64,000 nucleotides of DNA. It comes from Diadema antillarum (Eukaryota). The position numbers were made by a program, and so were the translations under genes. Within the stretch, counting starts at the first letter, position 1. Each line of letters begins with the position of its first letter. Where the stretch lies: NCBI RefSeq assembly GCF_040938485.1, contig NW_027270897.1:3100001-3164000 (forward strand), in the 5' to 3' direction. Below, in pieces: positions 6,001-59,800 of this stretch. Under the pieces are notes generated by a model. The model did no database searches, was not told the DNA's origin, and saw nothing but the letters and a program-made list of their open reading frames with translations.

Positions 6001-9000
6001 GCACAAGATATTCAGCACACTCAAAATACAGTGTAACTTCATTTTTGTGTCCATTTTCACCATTTTATGAGGAGATATTATGTAGGAATTTTAGATTTTG
6101 GCGGCCATTTTGAATATCTCAAAACCCTCAAGGATGCAAGAGTTGCATCATCCAGATTCGAATTCAGCATTCTCAAAATACTTAGGGTAAAACCATCAAA
6201 GAGCATCGGGTAGACGGTGAAGCATGGTTAGGCCCAAAATCTTTCTTTGGCACCCAGACCAAATACAATTTTGTCTTCCTCATAATTTTATGTCCGAGAT
6301 GCCGCATAGCAAGATTGTCGGCTACTGTGAGCTGCTCGTATAGAAACACATTTTTGGACTTTACATCAAATCGACTTTGATATCTAAGACGAGGGATCTA
6401 CGACGAATATGCCATCCCTGCATCATGCGCAATGCTGGAAGATAGCACGGGATGAAATCATCGGCTGCTATGATGTTTTCGTTGATAGAAAATTTCGGAA
6501 TGTGACATAAATTGTGGAATTACCTCGTCATAACCCATAGTGTTTTGATGAATAAGGAAATTACGTTGTAACATAAATGAGGAATGCGTGACTCTAAGAA
6601 TTTCTCCTGCTACTGACATGGTACAACGTTCAGGATTTTTTTTTATTGTTTTTAGGCAAAGAAATCGTAATACATGGTTTCATTATCAAACCATGAAAGC
6701 TAAAAGCCTTCATCTTTAAAATCTCATAAGAGTCTTGAGATCAGAGATTGCCTCCCACCATTTGGACATGATGAGAGCAGGGGCATGCCAGGAGGCGGGT
6801 GAGTGTCTCTCTCCCATAAAGTGGGTATCTCACTGGATTAGAGAGTAGGTGGCGACCCTGCGGCGACTCAAGTCTCACTGGTCGCAGAGACGTCTCCGCG
6901 AAGTCTCCAAGACCCCGTTTACAGTGAGTGAAAGGGCCGGGCTCGGCGGCGGCCGAGCCCGGCCTTCATTTCACTGTAAACGCACAAAAGGCTAAATGCC
7001 GTACCAAAATCGGCCGCGCATTTGGCCAAGATCTGGAGGTAGTCTCGGCCGCGGCTCGGCCTTTTTTCACTGTAAACGCAAACTGGGCCAAATGCGGTAC
7101 CAAACTGCGACCGGCGCCCTCCCAATAATAGTGTTTATTTGCAAGTAGAGCGCCACTACGACAAAATATTGAGAGGTTTGAATTACTGTAAAAGCCCGGG
7201 CCGAGCCCTCAACTGTAGACGGACAAAACTGCGGGGCCGAGTACCGCAATTGAGGCCGGGCTCAGCCTGGGCTCTGCCCGGGCTCGGACCAGCCCTGCAC
7301 TGTAAACGGGTCCTAGAGACTAGCCTCTTCTCCGGGGAATCGAACATGTTCGATTTTTTTAGAAGACTTTTTTTTTTCAGTCTCCAGCTGGTCTCAGAGA
7401 CATCTCTTTAGTCGAGGAGACTAATTTTATCCGCGAGGTCTCTGAGACATCTCCTTGACCTTGCGGCGAATAATTGGTAACCTTCCGGAGACCTCTTTGA
7501 GACGTCTCCACGACGTCGCGGTGTGTGACGTCTCTGCGACTTCCGAACGAATAAGTTGTCGCCATGTTTGGAGACGTCTTGAACAGTCGTCGCCCTGGAG
7601 ACACCTTCATGGTGACAACGCAAGCCATCTCTTGATCGTTAGAGTCGCACGAGTCGCGGCAGTCGCGGTGAAGTCTCCTTCAACGAGATATAGGCCCTTG
7701 GTTCACACATGACACACATGCTTTTTATTGTCTCAATGTAATGTTTTGTCTCAATGCAGTGTTTCGTATAAACGTGTATGAATGAATATATTCATTTCAT
7801 TACAACTCAGTGTCCCCAGAGGCTAAAAGAAAATTAAAAGCCACCTGGTGTGTGTGTGTGTGTCGGGGGGGAGGGGGGGGGCGTTGCGTGGAGATCATAG
7901 TCATTAGATTGAATTGACCTTTTCCTCACCTAAGCAGCCATATCCGATCCATTCGAGATGGAACTCCGTTTGCAGATACGCACTTACTACATTGTTATAC
8001 ATTAGAATTACATAGTACTTATGATTGCGAATTTCATGGTACTTGCAGTGATGACGATAATCAAAAGAATGCTGTGAATTGTAATGATATCGATTATAAT
8101 GCCATCATGGATATCTAATAACATTGAACCTTTTAAGTAAAGAAAACATTAATTGAAGCAGAGTACTTTTTAGTATCTATAATGATAGTGATAGTAATTA
8201 AAAGTGTGTAAAATAAATGAGAGAAATAATTCTCAGAAAGCCTGCATTTGGGTGCATCATAAAACAAATTCATGTTATTACAATTAGAAAGGATGTACAA
8301 AAGAAATTGAAATTGATATATTATTTACGTCAAAATCAGAAAATTCCTTCATCTGGTCATTTTACTCTCTCCCTTGGAGCATGAAGGCAGGTTGAATTAC
8401 ATGACAGACGAAAATCATTAATCTCAACGTTTCCGCGAAATTACCGGAAAGGAAACACAAAAAATACATCATAAGCGCCTCAACAATCATAAATTATCTC
8501 AGAAAGACACGGTTTTCTCCATCGTCTGGCTTCCCTTACGGGTCACTTCCCGCGTGGTCGGCCACCATGTTTGGTTGAGCAGTCAGCAAGGATTTGTGCG
8601 CGTCATGGAGCAGTATTAGGACACACGTGGTCACTGCTGTAGAGTGTTAATTTGGATAATTGCACACTTCGTCATAACCAGAACCGATGAATGATTAATG
8701 ACAGTGGATTTATCCTCTTTCCCTGCTTTTCCGCACGCTTTGGACCTTAGCTGTCTGTAATGAAAGGCACAGGCTTTTGCACTTGGTGGCAATATAGCAG
8801 TTACTTTCGGTTGATTACGGGGAATATTTTCCCCGTTTTCACAGTATTCTGTTGATAATCTTTCACTTATTAACTATCATCATTTCCGAATATGTTTTTT
8901 TACAGTCTTGATATGTCGAGGGTTCTGCATTTTGTAAATACGTTGTGACCATGCAATAGAGACTTGAACAGAACTAGGCCCTGATCTTTCAATTCTGATC

Positions 9001-16600: not shown

Positions 16601-19600
16601 TTTCCTGAAGTGGAACAAGGAAGATTACGGCGGCATCGACACCCTGGAGGTCTCTCCTTTCAGCATCTGGCTGCCGGACGTGAAGTTGTTAGAAAAGTAC
16701 GTTTGTTTGTTTGTTTGTTTGTTTGTTTGTTTGTTTATCTGTCTTTTTTCTGTCTTTTTGGGGATTGTTTAATTGTTTGTTTGCTTGCTTGTCTGTCTGT
16801 CTGTATCCACAGTCAGATTACTACGCTCATCATTTTCCGCATCTTCAGCTTCGTCAACAGCGCACCGCAGACGATTGCCATTGCCATTACAAGTGCATGT
16901 ATATAGGGCCATCCTTATCTTACAGTACAGTCCATTATGACTTTTAAAAAAAATCCTCAAGATTACAGTTTACCGCTCATTCCGCGGGACTATCTGTTAC
17001 CACAGTAAAGTCCGTGACCCGCTACATCCAACGGAGCCATAAGTCGGGAGTGGCCGATTGCTGATAATGGCATAGGGCATTTTATCTCTATTCCTCTTCT
17101 CTAATATAAAATATGATTCATGAAACAAAAATGCCCATGAACAGACATTTCGAATGCTGTAGGAGAGCATAGAGAGTGGGCCTGGAAATTTGTGTTTCGA
17201 GAAAACCACCTTCAAAGTTTTCATTGCAGCTGACACCACGTGTCTTTATCTACCGTTTTCTATTTGCCATTACGTTTATTTTGTCCACGTCATTTTCTTT
17301 GACATTTTAAGAACGCTATAGTAATTAAGAAGGAAGATCCAAAGATACCGAACAGAAAACTTTGTCGAACGAAAAAAAAATCCTAAACCGCAATTAGTAT
17401 TTTTTTCTTACTTTAATATGTTGCCGAAAGAACGCCTTAATGCACTGCATCATTTGATATCAAAACGGTGCGGTGATAACAGTCATCCTGTAAAACGCAA
17501 GGACGTGTCAAATACGTTTTCTTTCGCATCTTCTGATATGCTTTCGTGTAGCATTTCTTTTCGTTTTCATAATTCACGACGCACTGTCGTGTTTGCTTTC
17601 CACAGCTGATACGAGGCAGTTCTCAGACTGGTGTAAACTGTCATGGTAGAGACGAGCAAACTGCATATTAGGATCTGTTAAACAGACAAAGAAAATGTAG
17701 AAAGAATGAGGAGAATAAGATATGTAAGAAAAAGGACTGAGAGGAAAAGAAAGAGACAGAGAGGGGGAATTACACTGGCGCGACTCATCTTGTTTCACTG
17801 CTCATTATCATCCCACACCTATAGGGCCTCTGTTATAAAAAGTTTCAATAGTACTAGCCATTCATTTTTGTTTATTAGAAGTCCATGCTGACATGAGTGT
17901 ATTAAGGAAAAACTTACGATGGATTATAACTCTGTGAACAGGGACCTGGTCCAGGGCTTGAACTTGTATCCTATGTGTATACATTTAATGAGGTGCGCGT
18001 CTCGCTGAAAAGAGGAAAGCCGTTTTAACAAACAGGCGAGGGCCTGTCACACACACCATGATCATTTTGAATTCTACCATAATGTCTATGGGTTGATTCT
18101 CTGATCATTACCATAACTGAGGGATTGTCTGCTTTATGTTTCCGGAATGGATTCTGACTACACTTACGTTCAGACGGTGATCCTTAGCTTAGCGGATAAG
18201 GTAACTTCGAGAATAATTTTGTACTTATGCATGGGGCGCCAAGTGTCGCATGGTCTTTTTCGTTTTTTTTTTCGTTGACAAGTGACAAAATCGATATCAT
18301 CGACGAAATCAACATTTTGCTAACGACATTACAATTTCGTCACGGAATGACAATTTCGTCATTTAGTTGACGAAATTGACGTTGTCCCTTGTCAACGAAA
18401 AAAAAAAAAATTCGTGACGAAAGGGACAATGAGACACTTGGCGCCCCATACTTAACTACGAGCTTATCCTCGAAGTTAAGGATCACCGTCTGAACTTGAG
18501 TGTGACGTGGAATGTAGATTTTTTAAGAATAGTGCAGTCCAAGGCACAAAAGGTTACTGTATTTTGTCGGAGATATACCTTGCAAATAATGAAGAAAGAG
18601 ACAGAGTTGAGAAGAACGAGACGTTGAGGATAGTTAGGTGGTTATGTGTGGATGATGTAGTTATTTGAGCTCTGCTTTATCCGTCGTCATAACATATTAT
18701 TTAACAACCCCTCCTGTTTCGATGTTGTTGCAATCATTTCAATATTCCCTTCTTCTTCCCTTTGCTTCTTACCAGGGAGGTTGAAGAATTATTCCACCTC
18801 CCTGGTTCGACAAGGTGCCTTAATTTATCTGAAAGACACCAAAATGCATCATAAGCTGTCGCCTTTTCTAAGGAGAGAATGATCCACCGACAGCGTGGGT
18901 AGAAAGCCGAGAGTTCCAAAAGTCGAGAGTGGTGTGGACAAGGAAGGGAGTAGGGATGAAAAGAGTCTTGGTTTGTGTTTCAGCTACAGACCAAATCCGA
19001 TGCATCTTCGTGCTTATGATACAAGATGACAAAATTATCATGATCATAAATCAAGATTGCATAGATGTCTAAGATGTTGAAAATTTATGTTTAACAACCA
19101 ATCAGTGTATAAAAATTTCATTATTATGATTGTGTTGGCAAAGACAGTATTTATTTTGATTTAAATTGTTATGTTATGTTGTGTTATGTTATGTTATGTT
19201 ATGTTATGTTATGTTATGTTATGTTATGTTATGTTATGTTATGTTGTTTAAAGTGTGGCGTAATCATAATCCCCTCCAATGCCCCAGTTTAAACCGTTAT
19301 CGACGCTAACTCTGGCAGAAGGACTTCGAAGGAGGTTTTAGAATCCCTGGCTGAGCGCGTCTGTCATCCATGTACGAGATATTTTCAACTTTAACATAGT
19401 AAATTTTAGTGTTCATTCCTACTTGGAGAGTCAAAGCACATCCCTGCAGTTCTCGAATCTTGCCTTATCCTCGGATTACCTTTCAAACGATTCTTTGGCT
19501 GGTTTCGTTGTAGCCACTTACGTCTGATGAGTGCAGACAGAGCTCACTGTGTTAGCCCTCCTCCGTTCATCGCCCAAAGTTTGCCCCGAAGTTACCATCT

Positions 19601-35987: not shown

Positions 35988-38900
35988 GTAATTCTCCGTG
36001 TTTATATAAAAATGTTGACTGCATATCATTCTTAACAGGAGTATTTTATACATAACCCATTCATTGATGGTCCCCGTCATCAAGTGATCATACTTTTAAA
36101 TTTTCCAGGCTCTCCCATATTTCCATGTGTCGTACTTTGTTGCCAATAACTTGCTACACAAACAATGACAAACGGTGTAGAGCACCTGATTATCAAATGA
36201 AGACTTTGTTCGTTTGTTTGTTCATTTTCCATCTAAGAAGACGGCTGCCTAGCCCACATTCAGCTACACATTGCTGGTCTTCCATGGGGTCCAGTCTGAT
36301 GTTATAGGCGGGACCACTTCACCGGGTTAAACACCCTGCTCTTTGCGATGAATTAATGAAGCATGATCTTGTACGTGTTTATATGAGTTGAAACTCTCTC
36401 ACGCACGGGACTTTCATCTTATGTCCGATCTGAGGGACAGAGTGCTTTGCCTCTTACTAGAGGGGACAGTATGATTACACACAACATTGCTCAGAGAGAC
36501 TCGGGAATCGAACCCGGGCCCTTTGCATCTGGAGGCAGACGCGCTGCCCGACTGAGCCAACTCTCAGAGTCTTCGAAGATTCGGCTGTGGACTTTAAGAA
36601 TCGGTGAAAAAACGTGGTCAAACACTGTAGGTCATTCCTGCAATTATTGGATTGCAATAATACCTTCAGTGTAAACATTTATCATCATGTAGCTTTCTTT
36701 TTCGCTCGAAGGTGACCGCATAAGAACCTCCTCAGAAAGGATTATTTTTCCCTCTTGTCGAGGAGGAGGTAGGGAAGAGCAAACATAATTTCCTTTCATT
36801 TGGATGTAAAACGACATCCGTGCAGAGCTCATCCAGGGACATTGGTTAGTGAGAACCCCAAGAGTACTGGAAGACAATCTCTACACTTCCAAAATTATGT
36901 TTATCTAAATTCAATTTTGTTAAAGTTATAGGAAGACAGAATTTTGATGGAATGCACAAAAATTACTTAGTATTATCAGTATGCATAAAGTATACACATT
37001 GTTGGCAGTATATTGCGTACATACTAACTTTCTCGATTGGATTTACCATGGACCTACTACACACACGTATACCAGGAACGGAGGTCTTTCTTTAAGCCCA
37101 TCATCACCGCCGCCATTTGATTTTTGTGTGCATCTTGATGAGTGGTACATTCACATGTTTGGACAATGATAAGTGTGTAATCGTGCGTTGTCACTGACAA
37201 AAATAATAAGAACCGTTGCCCTAATGTCGGTCTTATTTGGCTGAGGTGCCTTTTCAGACTCAACTGCCTTTGAATAAACATCAGTGATGGGGAGCAGCAG
37301 ACCTCAAAATATGACAAATTTTGTAAGACAAAATTAGTAATTACTGAAGTGGACTCTAGTCTTGTAGGCACGCATGTAACGTTGCTTAATAGTAAGACAT
37401 ACATGTCATCTACCGTGGTTACTGGCCATGTTTACTCTGAAACAATGTGCGAAAAATGGCAAAAGTAAGATTACAAATCACATTCAACCTGCCAAAATGT
37501 TTGCTTTCTCTCGTAAAGTAAGTGTATTTCAAAAATGATATTGGCTGAGCGATGATATCCCAATGTACATGCATTTTCTTGATTTGAGAGACTACTATCT
37601 TCTTCGCATGTAGGTTTTAGATTTCTCGTAGCGCCGTTTTGTTTTTATCCACGCTGGCTGTCGGGAGAAGGAAAGGATAGGTATGACCAGGGAGGTGTTT
37701 TGTCTCACCTCCCTGGTATGACTATGGAGTTTTCATCACAGGTGTGCCTGTTGGAATGTTTCGATACAACGTGATATCACCTGGATTACTGATCAGCAAA
37801 GCAAGACATGTTTTCTCGCTCAGGTGCAAATTGTCAATTTTGTTTACCAGGCCATAATGGGTTTACTGGTTACGTAAGAGATTGAGTGCGGCAATATTTA
37901 CACGAAGGAATTTTATGTACACAGTAGGCCTACACATGCATTTACAACGTGAAGCTTGATGATAGGATCATCAATGTTCAAACAGAGACATTTGCTTTCA
38001 CAGCTTTCTTATAGAATACAAATAGGATAAGAATACGTAGACTTAACATTTCTAATGTCACAAGAAAGAGAGTTCGAATTATCGGGTCCGGTGTCTCTAA
38101 AAGATTTCAGAGCCATCATCATTTTAGGATTATATAAAAGATGTTTGTTTGTTTGTTTTTTCAGATTGTCTTGTAGAACACGAGTGTATGCATTTGTTCA
38201 ACTGCCTTACATTATAAGCTGTCGAAACATGAAGAATGAATTTTGAAGAAAGTTAATGGCATCTATACCTGGTTAATTCTGCCAGGGAGGCTCACCTCCC
38301 TGATTCTGCTCATGAAGAATCTTTCAAGGCCATTAATGGTCTGGCCCCAGGATACCTGTCTTCCCTAATCTAGCGACGGCAGACTCGTCCTGGCCTTCGT
38401 TCATCTGGCCTTACTCTCCAGGTGCCCATCACACATCTCAAGGGATACGGAGACCGGGCATTTTCTTCTATTGCTCCTCGCCTATGGAACTCCCTCCCAT
38501 CTTTCCCTCCTTGAAATTGACAAACTGGATCACTTCAAAGCCTCACTCAAAACTCACATTTTTCACCGGGTATTCAACTGTCTTGGAGGAGTCTGTGCCC
38601 TTTGGATGTTTCTATAACAGATTATATGGCGCCATACAAATGCTGTGGATCATCATCATCATCATCATCTGAATGATCCTAAGAACCCGAGTTAGCGCAT
38701 ACACATATAGCTTTCTAATATTAACAATCAGCCCCAAACAGGTTTCATCTTTCCCTCATTCAGTGCGCTTCTCCAGCCGTCCACAACAATGTATACACAC
38801 ATATGAAACATCTATAACTGGCTTTGCATTTCAAAGAATTCTTCATTTCTATAAATTACGTCACACCGAGCAATATATCGAGAGAGCTTTAAATAATCTC

Positions 38901-56800: not shown

Positions 56801-59800
56801 ACAACTACACGACGTATTAAAAAAAAAACTCACAGAAGAGAAAAACAGGGAAACGGCGGAATAAGCTGTCATGCCTGTCCAACGCCTGGCTCAAGCGTGC
56901 CGGCAGAAATTCTAGATGCTGGCGTATCCGGTCAGTCGCTCATTAACCAGAAGTGCAGCAGTCGCAGCGGAGGTTACTACCGGTCAAACTGCGAGAGCCA
57001 TGCAGGAATGGAATATATCGACAGCGCAACAAATTCAGCAACGGGCGACTGGACAGCCTGGGTATCAGATCTGATACAGGCACACGTAGAAAGAAGAAGG
57101 GAAAAGAAAGAAATGAATAATGAGAAAGCGAGGAGTGGAAGAGCTGAGAAGAAAATGTGACTAGCAGTATATGAATGCATCCATCATACATCTCACTTTA
57201 TCACTTCAAGTGTGCGGACGTATACGTGTATAGAGGACAGTAGAAGGGGGGAAACAAAAGAACGCTTAGCGATAAAAGCAGTTGTTTGTTGTTGTTTAAG
57301 GGGAAAATAGTGAGGACCACTTGAACATGAATTGCTCCAGCCAGTTCTGGTATCATATCAAACAATATCATGAATAGTTCAAAGAATATCATTTATATTT
57401 CAACTTGTGCATCCTTTGTCTCCATGGAGGAGCTCATGAGAAAGAAGAAGAGGAAGAAGAAAGAATTTAAAGTCTCCTCATGGAGGCGCATAAACAGAAC
57501 AAAATAAAGATGTTAGTGCAACTGATGGACGCAAGAATCTCATCAATTTGAAAAATAAAGATTGTGAACTTGCCTCCAATAGGAGCTCATAAAAGGCCTA
57601 TTTTTGGGTCACACAAACATGAATATCCAACACCGCGCGCGTGTTATACCAACACACACAAACATACGTTGGGGATAGCACACATATACAATGACAATAC
57701 ACACACGTTGTATTGACAAAGGTATACAAGACTCGAAGTTGTTATATCGTACAAATTGAATTGGGTGGGAAATAGATAGGATGCACTCTCTGGATTAGAA
57801 CTTGTGCTGGAAAGGAGCTCGACTGGAGTATAGGATCTGGATCACCGAGTTTCTTCCATGTCATGTGACCAGAATAACCGCATCGCATTGGCATGAATAT
57901 TCAACTGACAGCTCCTCGTGTTATTCAATCCCTATTTTGTGGTTGCGGATTAACGTACAATTTTCCTGGAAAGCTGTAGCAGTATACAAAGTGGAAATCT
58001 AGTTGCATGTTACATAAACCTGATAAGGCATGGACCAAAAAATAAATAAATAAACAAATAAATAAATAAATAAATCAATCAATCAATCAATAAATAAAAC
58101 AGATAGCACTTGAATATGATGTGGTCAAAATGGCGACAATCAAGACTTCTATCATTGTTACCAAAACCATGAATGCCTACATTATACTCGGTATTTTGTT
58201 ATTGCATAGTTTGTAAACCTTGTAAAGCATGAAATCTGACAAAATAACACATACCGCATTTCGACAATTAAGTAAAGAAACGTCAATTAATGCACAAATT
58301 ATTTTCACCCCGCTGTGGAGAACACCCCATCCCACGACATAAGCTTTGCTATTTACGCCTACACAACAAACGTTATTATTTTAATGGTTGGTGGAATGCT
58401 AACATATCTTGCGGTATTACTATAGAGCAATGAGGTAGTAAGCGAGTTTACCTCCTCGGGGATCACAGAGTAGGGGACTTTGAATTTTCACCTCCCTGGT
58501 GAGAGGGCGCTGGGTCAATGGAGGACATATTAGTTCCGGTTCATCTGCGCACCAGTGGGAATAAAAAGAAGGCTCGTCGTGAAGACTGAAGAGGACCGGT
58601 CTTTTGTTTTGTTCTCACTCACATTTCACAGTGGTTGACGAACGAGTGTAATGCACTCTTTATGTGCCCCTGTTTCTATGAGATGACACCTCGCATTTCA
58701 GATCACGCTGGATTTCATGTGATTTGCGAGGGCGTGCACTGTTTTGGCACAAAGAGGGCACGGCCGAGCGGCACAGGGTAAATACAGGTTAACATTTCTT
58801 TCCAGTGGCAGTCTTCTCAGGTATGGTTTGTTTTCAGTGACTTGCCAAGACATAAAACTTCTTTGCCGACTATTCTAAACCTCAGGAACATTATCTTTCC
58901 ATTTCAAACAAAAAAGCACATAAGCAAAGAAGCAAACAAGAGTAAAACAAAAAGTTATAAAGGTGTCAAAGTCATAGGAAATTGAAAATGAATAGATATC
59001 ATTAACACTGTAATGTACCCACAATTATTAGTACTACAGATTACCCCCTTGCCATCCCTCTTTCTTTGATATCAGCGCAAAATTTGGGCGTAGTGAATGT
59101 CTAAATGCATGTTATTTCAGATGAAAATTTGATATGAATGTAATATGTTAAATATGTCGGGAATAAATGTATTAATTCACCTTAGCTTGTGTAGGAGTGT
59201 AATTTGAGTTTGAAACCCCCTTTCCCCCGTAATCATTTTACATTAAAAAAAAATGTGTCCGGATAACAGAGAGATCCGGATAAAGTGTGGCCGGATAAGA
59301 GAGGTCGGACTGTCTTGTCTCTTCAAGGGTAGACTTAGCAATGATGTCTTTACCGCTGAGACTTTTACATCGAATAAAGGCCTACTTTACTTGGAGACTT
59401 TCATGCGATTTTACATAGCCCTATGGAGCATTATAGGCCTACCTGTTTTTTTTTTTTTTTTTGCTTATGTTTTCTATCTCATTGCTTTAATGAGGGGCAG
59501 CAATTCACATGAAGTCTATGATTTGAGCTTTGTTTTGTAAACCCGCAGATAATTTTTCTGATGGCTAATACTCCAAGTTTAATGTCATTACTTGAAGTAC
59601 GATCAGCGCACCTTATGGGTCTATTCATACACAACCTTCAGTCACATGCGTTATTTCGCAGGTCTGTCTGCATGGCCCATTCGTGAACGAGACATGCGAA
59701 ATTCATCAGCTGCCGCCAATTGTTTTATCTGCAACTGTGGGTATCTTACACGGATTAAGATTGATTAGCAGCAAAGCACAACATAGTCTGACATGGATAG

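Follow-up and report, generated by a model that had tools for sequence, protein, structure and literature searches.

Short palindromic inserts with 7-bp duplications in a sea-urchin genome as probable excision scars of P-superfamily transposons

We analysed a 64-kb stretch of an echinoderm genome (the window; G000:C9:3100001-3164000 of a 1.75-Gb assembly) which carries two very short palindromic inserts, each flanked by perfect 7-bp direct repeats. Both inserts are probably scars at donor sites which P-superfamily cut-and-paste transposons have left, more precisely transposons of a Galileo-like branch that generates 7-bp target-site duplications (TSDs). The assignment to this superfamily is based on a 14.3-kb element of the same genome that encodes a P-type transposase, has related ends, shows 7-bp duplications and leaves the same kind of scars. 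This supports the original prediction, made from the letters of the window, that the inserts are P-superfamily excision scars.

In the mechanism we propose, a longer element with CAGGGAGGTG... ends would insert and thereby duplicate 7 bp of the palindromic target TnnGTnnnACnnA. A transposase would later excise the element with a long stagger, cutting one strand at the boundary between element and flank and the other approximately 18 nt inside the terminal repeat, so that both flanks would retain a single-stranded 3' tail with at most 18 nt from the end of the element. Joining of these non-complementary tails by end joining, accompanied by variable trimming and sometimes by 1 to 3 filler bases, would finally yield two pieces of 8 to 18 nt each, placed back to back between the two TSD copies.

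Window inserts and their parent elements

The perfect 7-bp repeats around the two inserts had been described before and proved exact when the letters of the window were re-read. The first insert, CAGGGAGGTGTTTTGTCTCACCTCCCTG (28 bp, 37688-37715), lies between two copies of GTATGAC (37681-37687 and 37716-37722), and the second, CAGGGAGGCTCACCTCCCTG (20 bp, 38283-38302), between two copies of ATTCTGC (38276-38282 and 38303-38309). In both cases, a CAGGGAGG...CCTCCCTG palindrome fills the space between the TSD copies, and no strand is assigned to any of these features. In the 28-bp scar, 10 nt from one end of the element (CAGGGAGGTG) are joined to 18 nt of the other (the reverse complement of CAGGGAGGTGAGACAAAA), and in the 20-bp scar 8 nt (CAGGGAGG) are joined to 12 nt (the reverse complement of CAGGGAGGTGAG), with zero filler bases in either. 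The end sequence in the 28-bp scar matches the right end of a 1.56-kb element (L036:112-1672) while the 20-bp scar reads GAG past the shared 10-mer, which is consistent with GAGA-type subfamilies. The 28-mer of the first scar was found again elsewhere in the genome, approximately 15 times among the matches listed.

The inserts are composed of two truncated ends of longer elements, for example of a non-coding 1.56-kb family with approximately 80 copies, and the outermost bases of scars are the ends of real 1.56-kb and 2.5-kb elements. Parent elements with the same ends include the above element at L036:112-1672 (1561 bp, TSD ATTCTAC), one at L053:101-1691 (TSD GTACATC) and a longer one at L035:146-2671 (2526 bp, TSD GTTTGAG). 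In the 1.56-kb family, the left end reads CAGGGAGGTGAGAGGAAAAGGAGTGGGCACT and the right end CAGGGAGGTGAGACAAAAAGGAGTGGGCACT, and the copy number of this family derives from 159 exact full ends genome-wide. Terminal repeats of the CAGGGAGGTG families measure only approximately 31 bp, and ORF scans of the 1.56-kb and 2.5-kb elements yielded no ORF of note. At least 40 copies of the 1.56-kb family are 100% identical over their first 160 bp, which indicates that this family moved recently. The source had been pictured as a once highly active family; judging by these copies, its activity is not confined to the past, and the families are not extinct.

The 8-mer CAGGGAGG occurs 7 times in the window compared with 0.65 expected occurrences, and none of 100 shuffles reached 7. 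Two further features, both absent from the original prediction, belong to this set. A third short insert (32 bp, 18773-18804, no strand assigned) has ends of the GGAAGA subfamily with a substitution in one of them and is without a clean duplication, its flanks TTCTTAC and GTTCGAC agreeing at 3 of 7 positions; this insert is probably a scar of greater age that has decayed. Further, a lone CAGGGAGGTG end (58489-58498, minus strand) is a perfect match for which neither a partner end nor a visible duplication was found nearby, and this end may be a half scar or a chance match.

Target duplications and a P-type element with related ends

To characterize the duplications, flanks were read for 103 short inserts, 86 of which are unique. 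Among these 86 sites, 49 (both window sites included) carry a perfect 7-bp duplication, 14 a duplication with one mismatch and two an 8-bp duplication, and no other duplication length fitted. The logo built from the 49 perfect sites is palindromic (TnnGTnnnACnnA), with T at position -3 (82%), G at 1 (45%) and T at 2 (78%) on one side and A at 6 (78%), C at 7 (45%) and A at +3 (82%) on the other. Duplications of 7 to 8 bp and a palindromic GT..AC target preference had both been foreseen, and the former turned out to be 7 bp and rarely 8 bp while the latter is directly visible in the logo.

Two other superfamily assignments were rejected. A hAT reading would need 8-bp duplications, present at only 2 of the 86 sites, and hAT excision leaves no element remnants. 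Dada elements, which generate 6-7-bp duplications, were set aside because they are known to target small-RNA genes.

The genome contains 79 matches to PF21787, the RNase H domain of P transposases. One P-type element is present in three copies of 14,258-14,259 bp (G000, C400:797281-811538, C400:923979-938237 and C643:53822-68079; loci L018-L020 and L114-L116) which show 100% identity across more than 8 kb and whose terminal repeats measure at least 220 bp. This element, referred to as the CATGGAGC family, contains a 607-aa ORF that matches PF21787 at 92 bits. Its end, CATGGAGCTACAAACGAAAGGAGAGGGCACTC, is identical to the CAGGGAGGTG-family end at 23 of 32 positions, inner motif AAAGGAGnGGGCACTC included, and a 28-bp subterminal match between the two lies at a similar distance from the end. 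Two further P families of the genome have the ends CAAGGAGC and CATAGAG.

The flanks of the 14.3-kb copies, six for the three copies, fall into three pairs of identical 7-mers (TAATAAC, GTTAAAA and ATGAAAC), which indicates that this element also generates 7-bp duplications. The pairs are found across copies and not within them. Such shuffling points to ectopic recombination between the 14.3-kb copies or to assembly joins inside the repeat. The end type of the element occurs in 1369 short scars, compared with 5 in the control, and perfect 7-bp duplications were seen in 6 of 6 sampled scars. Thus, this genome contains a genuine P-type element whose scars are the same as those of the CAGGGAGGTG families.

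We infer that a P-type transposase was also the enzyme that moved the CAGGGAGGTG families, and a coding partner with their ends was sought in several ways. No CAGGGAGG was present within 5 kb on either side of 20 P-transposase loci, a weak test given that the one delimited P element is 14.3 kb long, and a generic search of the same 20 loci for 7-bp duplications combined with CA-terminal-repeat pairs was equally negative. A pattern search with all ends carrying the inner motif returned no end pair spanning a P-transposase hit. Longer copies of the 1.56-kb family (two of 4763 bp, one of them at C7:2731036-2735798, as well as 6680 bp at C327:375346-382025 and 8819 bp at C594:946624-955442) do not overlap with any PF21787 hit. 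Across the 20 loci, the ORF scans of the parent elements and the comparison of these longer copies with PF21787 hits, no transposase-encoding element with CAGGGAGGTG ends was found, which counts against our explanation; of the elements delimited, only those of the related CATGGAGC family encode a P/THAP9-type transposase. As to the expectation that any autonomous partner would be of P type, no non-P partner emerged, but a partner with these exact ends did not emerge either. The CAGGGAGGTG families may be moved in trans, or their partner may lie among other loci.

The negative outcome of these searches for a P-type gene between CAGGGAGGTG ends would also fit true excision scars of a non-P superfamily whose chemistry happens to leave long tails, and to our knowledge the cleavage chemistry of several eukaryotic transposon superfamilies has never been mapped. 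We nevertheless consider such an origin unlikely. Three families of this genome that encode a P transposase (CATGGAGC, CAAGGAGC and CATAGAG) have related ends, and the end type of the P-encoding family leaves the same scars. Moreover, the combination of a 7/8-bp duplication with a palindromic GT..AC target matches Galileo, a Drosophila transposon of the P superfamily (PMC4168063).

Length wall and scars formed in place

Pairs of CAGGGAGG and CCTCCCTG were collected genome-wide and sorted by gap, with a control pattern run alongside. Gaps of 0-30 bp, equivalent to inserts of 16-46 bp, were found at 6675 sites (control: 10), of which 6382 have inserts of 16-36 bp and 293 have gaps of 21-30 bp and inserts of 37-46 bp. 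Gaps of 31-60 bp (inserts of 47-76 bp) were found at 294 sites, many of them two adjoining scars or a 48-bp multi-copy form. With 6382 sites at 16-36 bp and only 293 and 294 in the two longer classes, the length distribution is not continuous and has a wall near 36 bp. A cap near 34 bp had been anticipated; the cap itself exists, but its value is approximately 36 bp, each retained end stopping at approximately 18 nt. The 10-mer CAGGGAGGTG occurs 27,087 times in the genome compared with approximately 1,375 times in the control. All genome-wide counts are inflated, perhaps two- to four-fold, because the assembly is redundant (unpurged haplotypes or several individuals), as evident from the window section 37300-38700, which was assembled four times at 98-100% identity (C9, C318:927562-928962, C152:3100952-3102352 and C694:381041-382422).

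Retained lengths show the wall at each end separately. At least 14 nt of the right end are kept in 1179 scars genome-wide. In a by-eye tally of the 100 listed sites, 14, 15, 16, 17, 18, 19 and at least 20 nt were kept roughly 35, 30, 15, 3, 12, 2 and 0 times, respectively, meaning that retained lengths fall off, show a second peak exactly at 18 nt and then nothing. At least 18 nt of the right end are kept in 140 matches. Among the approximately 94 of these that were listed, 12-13 still match the element at base 19, 1-2 at base 20 and none at base 21, a level of agreement expected of chance filler. In case of the left end, 280 matches keep 18 nt while 0 of the approximately 98 listed reach 21 nt. 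The largest scars in four subfamilies consist of 18 nt, 1-2 filler bases and another 18 nt. Such a wall is the pattern expected if flanks keep 18-nt element tails that can only shorten, and from the scars we infer the 18-nt staggered cut itself.

A paralogous site inside the 1.56-kb family shows that scars are formed in place. The site CTGCAAA is single, i.e. empty, in the copy at L036 and duplicated around a scar in 12 other copies. Five kinds of scar share this one duplication: a 27-bp form (seven copies), an 18-bp form (three copies) and a 19-bp, a second 27-bp and a 39-bp form (one copy each), and the 27-bp form cannot be obtained from the 39-bp form by a further deletion. Five scar kinds with the same duplication, together with one empty copy, indicate that the scars arose at this site. 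No occupied copy of the site was seen among the copies read, and the series may result either from a nested element that was copied along and later excised independently or from repeated hits at the same site. An observation that counts against the excision-scar explanation is that no site was found at which one allele carries the complete element and another allele a scar. Separately, we observed pairs of scars exactly 7 bp apart, often of different subfamilies (e.g. G000, C64:1887882-1887939, C2:325443-325496 and C95:2934053-2934099), an arrangement which suggests that elements inserted into one 7-bp target more than once and were then excised.

Some junctions recur frequently. The 26-mer composed of 18 and 8 nt represents about half of the left-end matches listed. 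A 29-bp scar of 18 nt, TCG and 8 nt was seen with the same three filler bases at approximately 14 sites among the matches listed, on many contigs (e.g. G000, C2:2898249-2898277, C6:1176453-1176481 and C10:1743018-1743046), and the flanks of one copy carry the duplication CATGAAA. Because an identical TCG filler is too specific for independent repair, this scar was probably copied inside another repeat or is itself mobile. Further, a 48-bp form (CAGGGAGGTGGGAAGAGAAGGAGTGGAATCTCTCTTCCCACCTCCCTG and variants) is present at at least 20 places (e.g. G000, C18:6046373-6046420, C26:4226351-4226398 and C29:7101242-7101289). It keeps 24-29 nt of an end, which extends beyond the 18-nt wall and includes the inner motif, and it could be a true mini-transposon. 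Four identical 36-mers with common flanks represent one event copied along with a host repeat, and one 27-mer scar is also located in a repeat. The very recurrent junctions (26-mer and 29-mer) count against the excision-scar explanation and may reflect assembly redundancy, hitch-hiking in other repeats or mobility of small pieces.

Recurrence of this kind, i.e. identical short forms at many places such as the 28-mer of the first window scar and the frequent 18+8 26-mers, together with the 48-bp form and its 24-29 nt per end, would be expected if the palindromes were mobile mini-elements (micro-MITEs), inserted as 20-40-bp units and owing their 7-bp duplications to their own insertion. We regard this as quite improbable. 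The retained pieces never hold positions 19-31 of the terminal repeat although a mobile unit would be expected to need them, since precisely this part (AAGGAGWGGGCAC) is conserved between subfamilies and with the P-encoding element. Junctions are also highly diverse, and a single paralogous site with a single duplication carries five different scars. In addition, the window locus is present four times in the assembly, and the four 36-mers are one event that was copied with its host repeat.

Even less probable are extreme internal deletions caused by interrupted template copying (abortive gap repair) in place of joined cut tails: gap repair is known to yield internally deleted elements after P excision (PMC4168063, PMC2895639) and intermediate sizes of 47-76 bp and 240-270 bp are present, but its end points should spread along the element, whereas two different ends and several subfamilies all show an 18-nt wall, a secondary peak lies precisely at 18 nt, and sites past 36 bp are 20-fold fewer.

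Relation to known P-type systems and state of the window locus

Returning to excision by a P-type transposase, the closest experimental counterpart is the Drosophila P element, which upon excision leaves behind 3' tails of 17 nt and junctions of the type TSD-end-filler-end-TSD (PMC2895639); for Drosophila melanogaster, the 17-nt tails are credited to Beall and Rio 1997 in PMC10983969. The scars described here have the same order of parts (TSD, truncated left end, optional filler, truncated right end, TSD) and likewise involve non-complementary tails, short microhomologies and recurrent junction types. Unlike in the P element, the duplication is 7 bp instead of 8 bp and the longest retained piece 18 nt instead of 17 nt, the latter difference being a further observation against our explanation. 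While the Drosophila junctions come from laboratory assays, the scars reported here are natural, apparently fixed and present in thousands in a wild echinoderm genome.

In case of Galileo, duplications are 7 bp and rarely 8 bp with the consensus GTANTAC (PMC4168063), and exchange of flanking duplications between copies by recombination is described in PMC2775673. The system analysed here shares the 7-bp and rare 8-bp duplications, the palindromic GTAnTAC-like target and the long terminal repeats (at least 220 bp) of the transposase-bearing element, and the exchanged flanking duplications of the 14.3-kb copies, a sign of ectopic recombination unless they reflect assembly joins, represent a further similarity. 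It differs from Galileo in having T at -3 and A at +3 in place of AAN/NTT target flanks, in the 14.3-kb length of the coding element and in the short repeats, only approximately 31 bp, of the CAGGGAGGTG families. The word 'footprint' is absent from the Galileo paper (PMC4168063).

The excision-scar mechanism is already known from Drosophila experiments. The present analysis adds the identity of parent elements, a wall at 18 nt that two independent ends share, a series of scars at a single paralogous site, a logo of the target and a link with a Galileo-like P element. As far as the cited papers show, Drosophila is the only case in which the cut made by a P-type transposase has been mapped biochemically. 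Thousands of echinoderm scars with a sharp 18-nt limit suggest that the unusually long stagger has been conserved between animals that are very distant from each other, and this limit offers a sequence-only way of reading the cut site of a transposase. Further, there are more than 20 scars (6675) for every intact end that carries the inner motif (312 in the genome). The elements thus appear to be lost mainly through excision and subsequent end joining, and not through decay in place, and this process appears to provide a steady source of 25-45-bp intron insertions.

A wider reading that joins these points is tentative and, taken as a whole, rather doubtful. The long staggered cut, mapped so far only for Drosophila P, might be old and general in the P superfamily and readable from sequence alone, measuring 18 nt in the 7-bp Galileo-like branch and 17 nt in the 8-bp branch, and the 1.56-kb family might still be mobile, with a P-type enzyme acting on it in trans through recognition of the shared inner motif. 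If this were true, stagger and duplication would add up to 25 in both branches, which hints at a fixed transpososome geometry.

The two window scars themselves were followed in further assembled copies of this locus as well as in public sequencing runs of the same organism. The second scar has identical letters in contig C694, and the first carries two substitutions in contig C152, so the two scars are not very young. Both were also found in contigs of three other sequencing runs. Empty orthologous sites had been proposed as a check, but in the three other assembled locus copies and four public runs only scar-bearing copies were seen and no empty allele; no occupied allele of either window site was seen in these copies and runs either. 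Based on their presence in the other locus copies and runs, both scars look fixed.

Scars are denser in the window than the genome-wide density predicts, with 3 in 64 kb compared with approximately 0.24 expected, and further close pairs exist elsewhere (e.g. C2:2898249/2899571 and C2:3438329/3438643). This clustering fits either local hopping or a regional preference, local hopping being only suggested. The second scar also has a repetitive neighbour: a repeat of approximately 350 bp (window positions 38321-38669) begins 12 bp past its duplication and, with more than 3000 candidates of approximately 92% identity in a first look at the genome, represents a high-copy short element.
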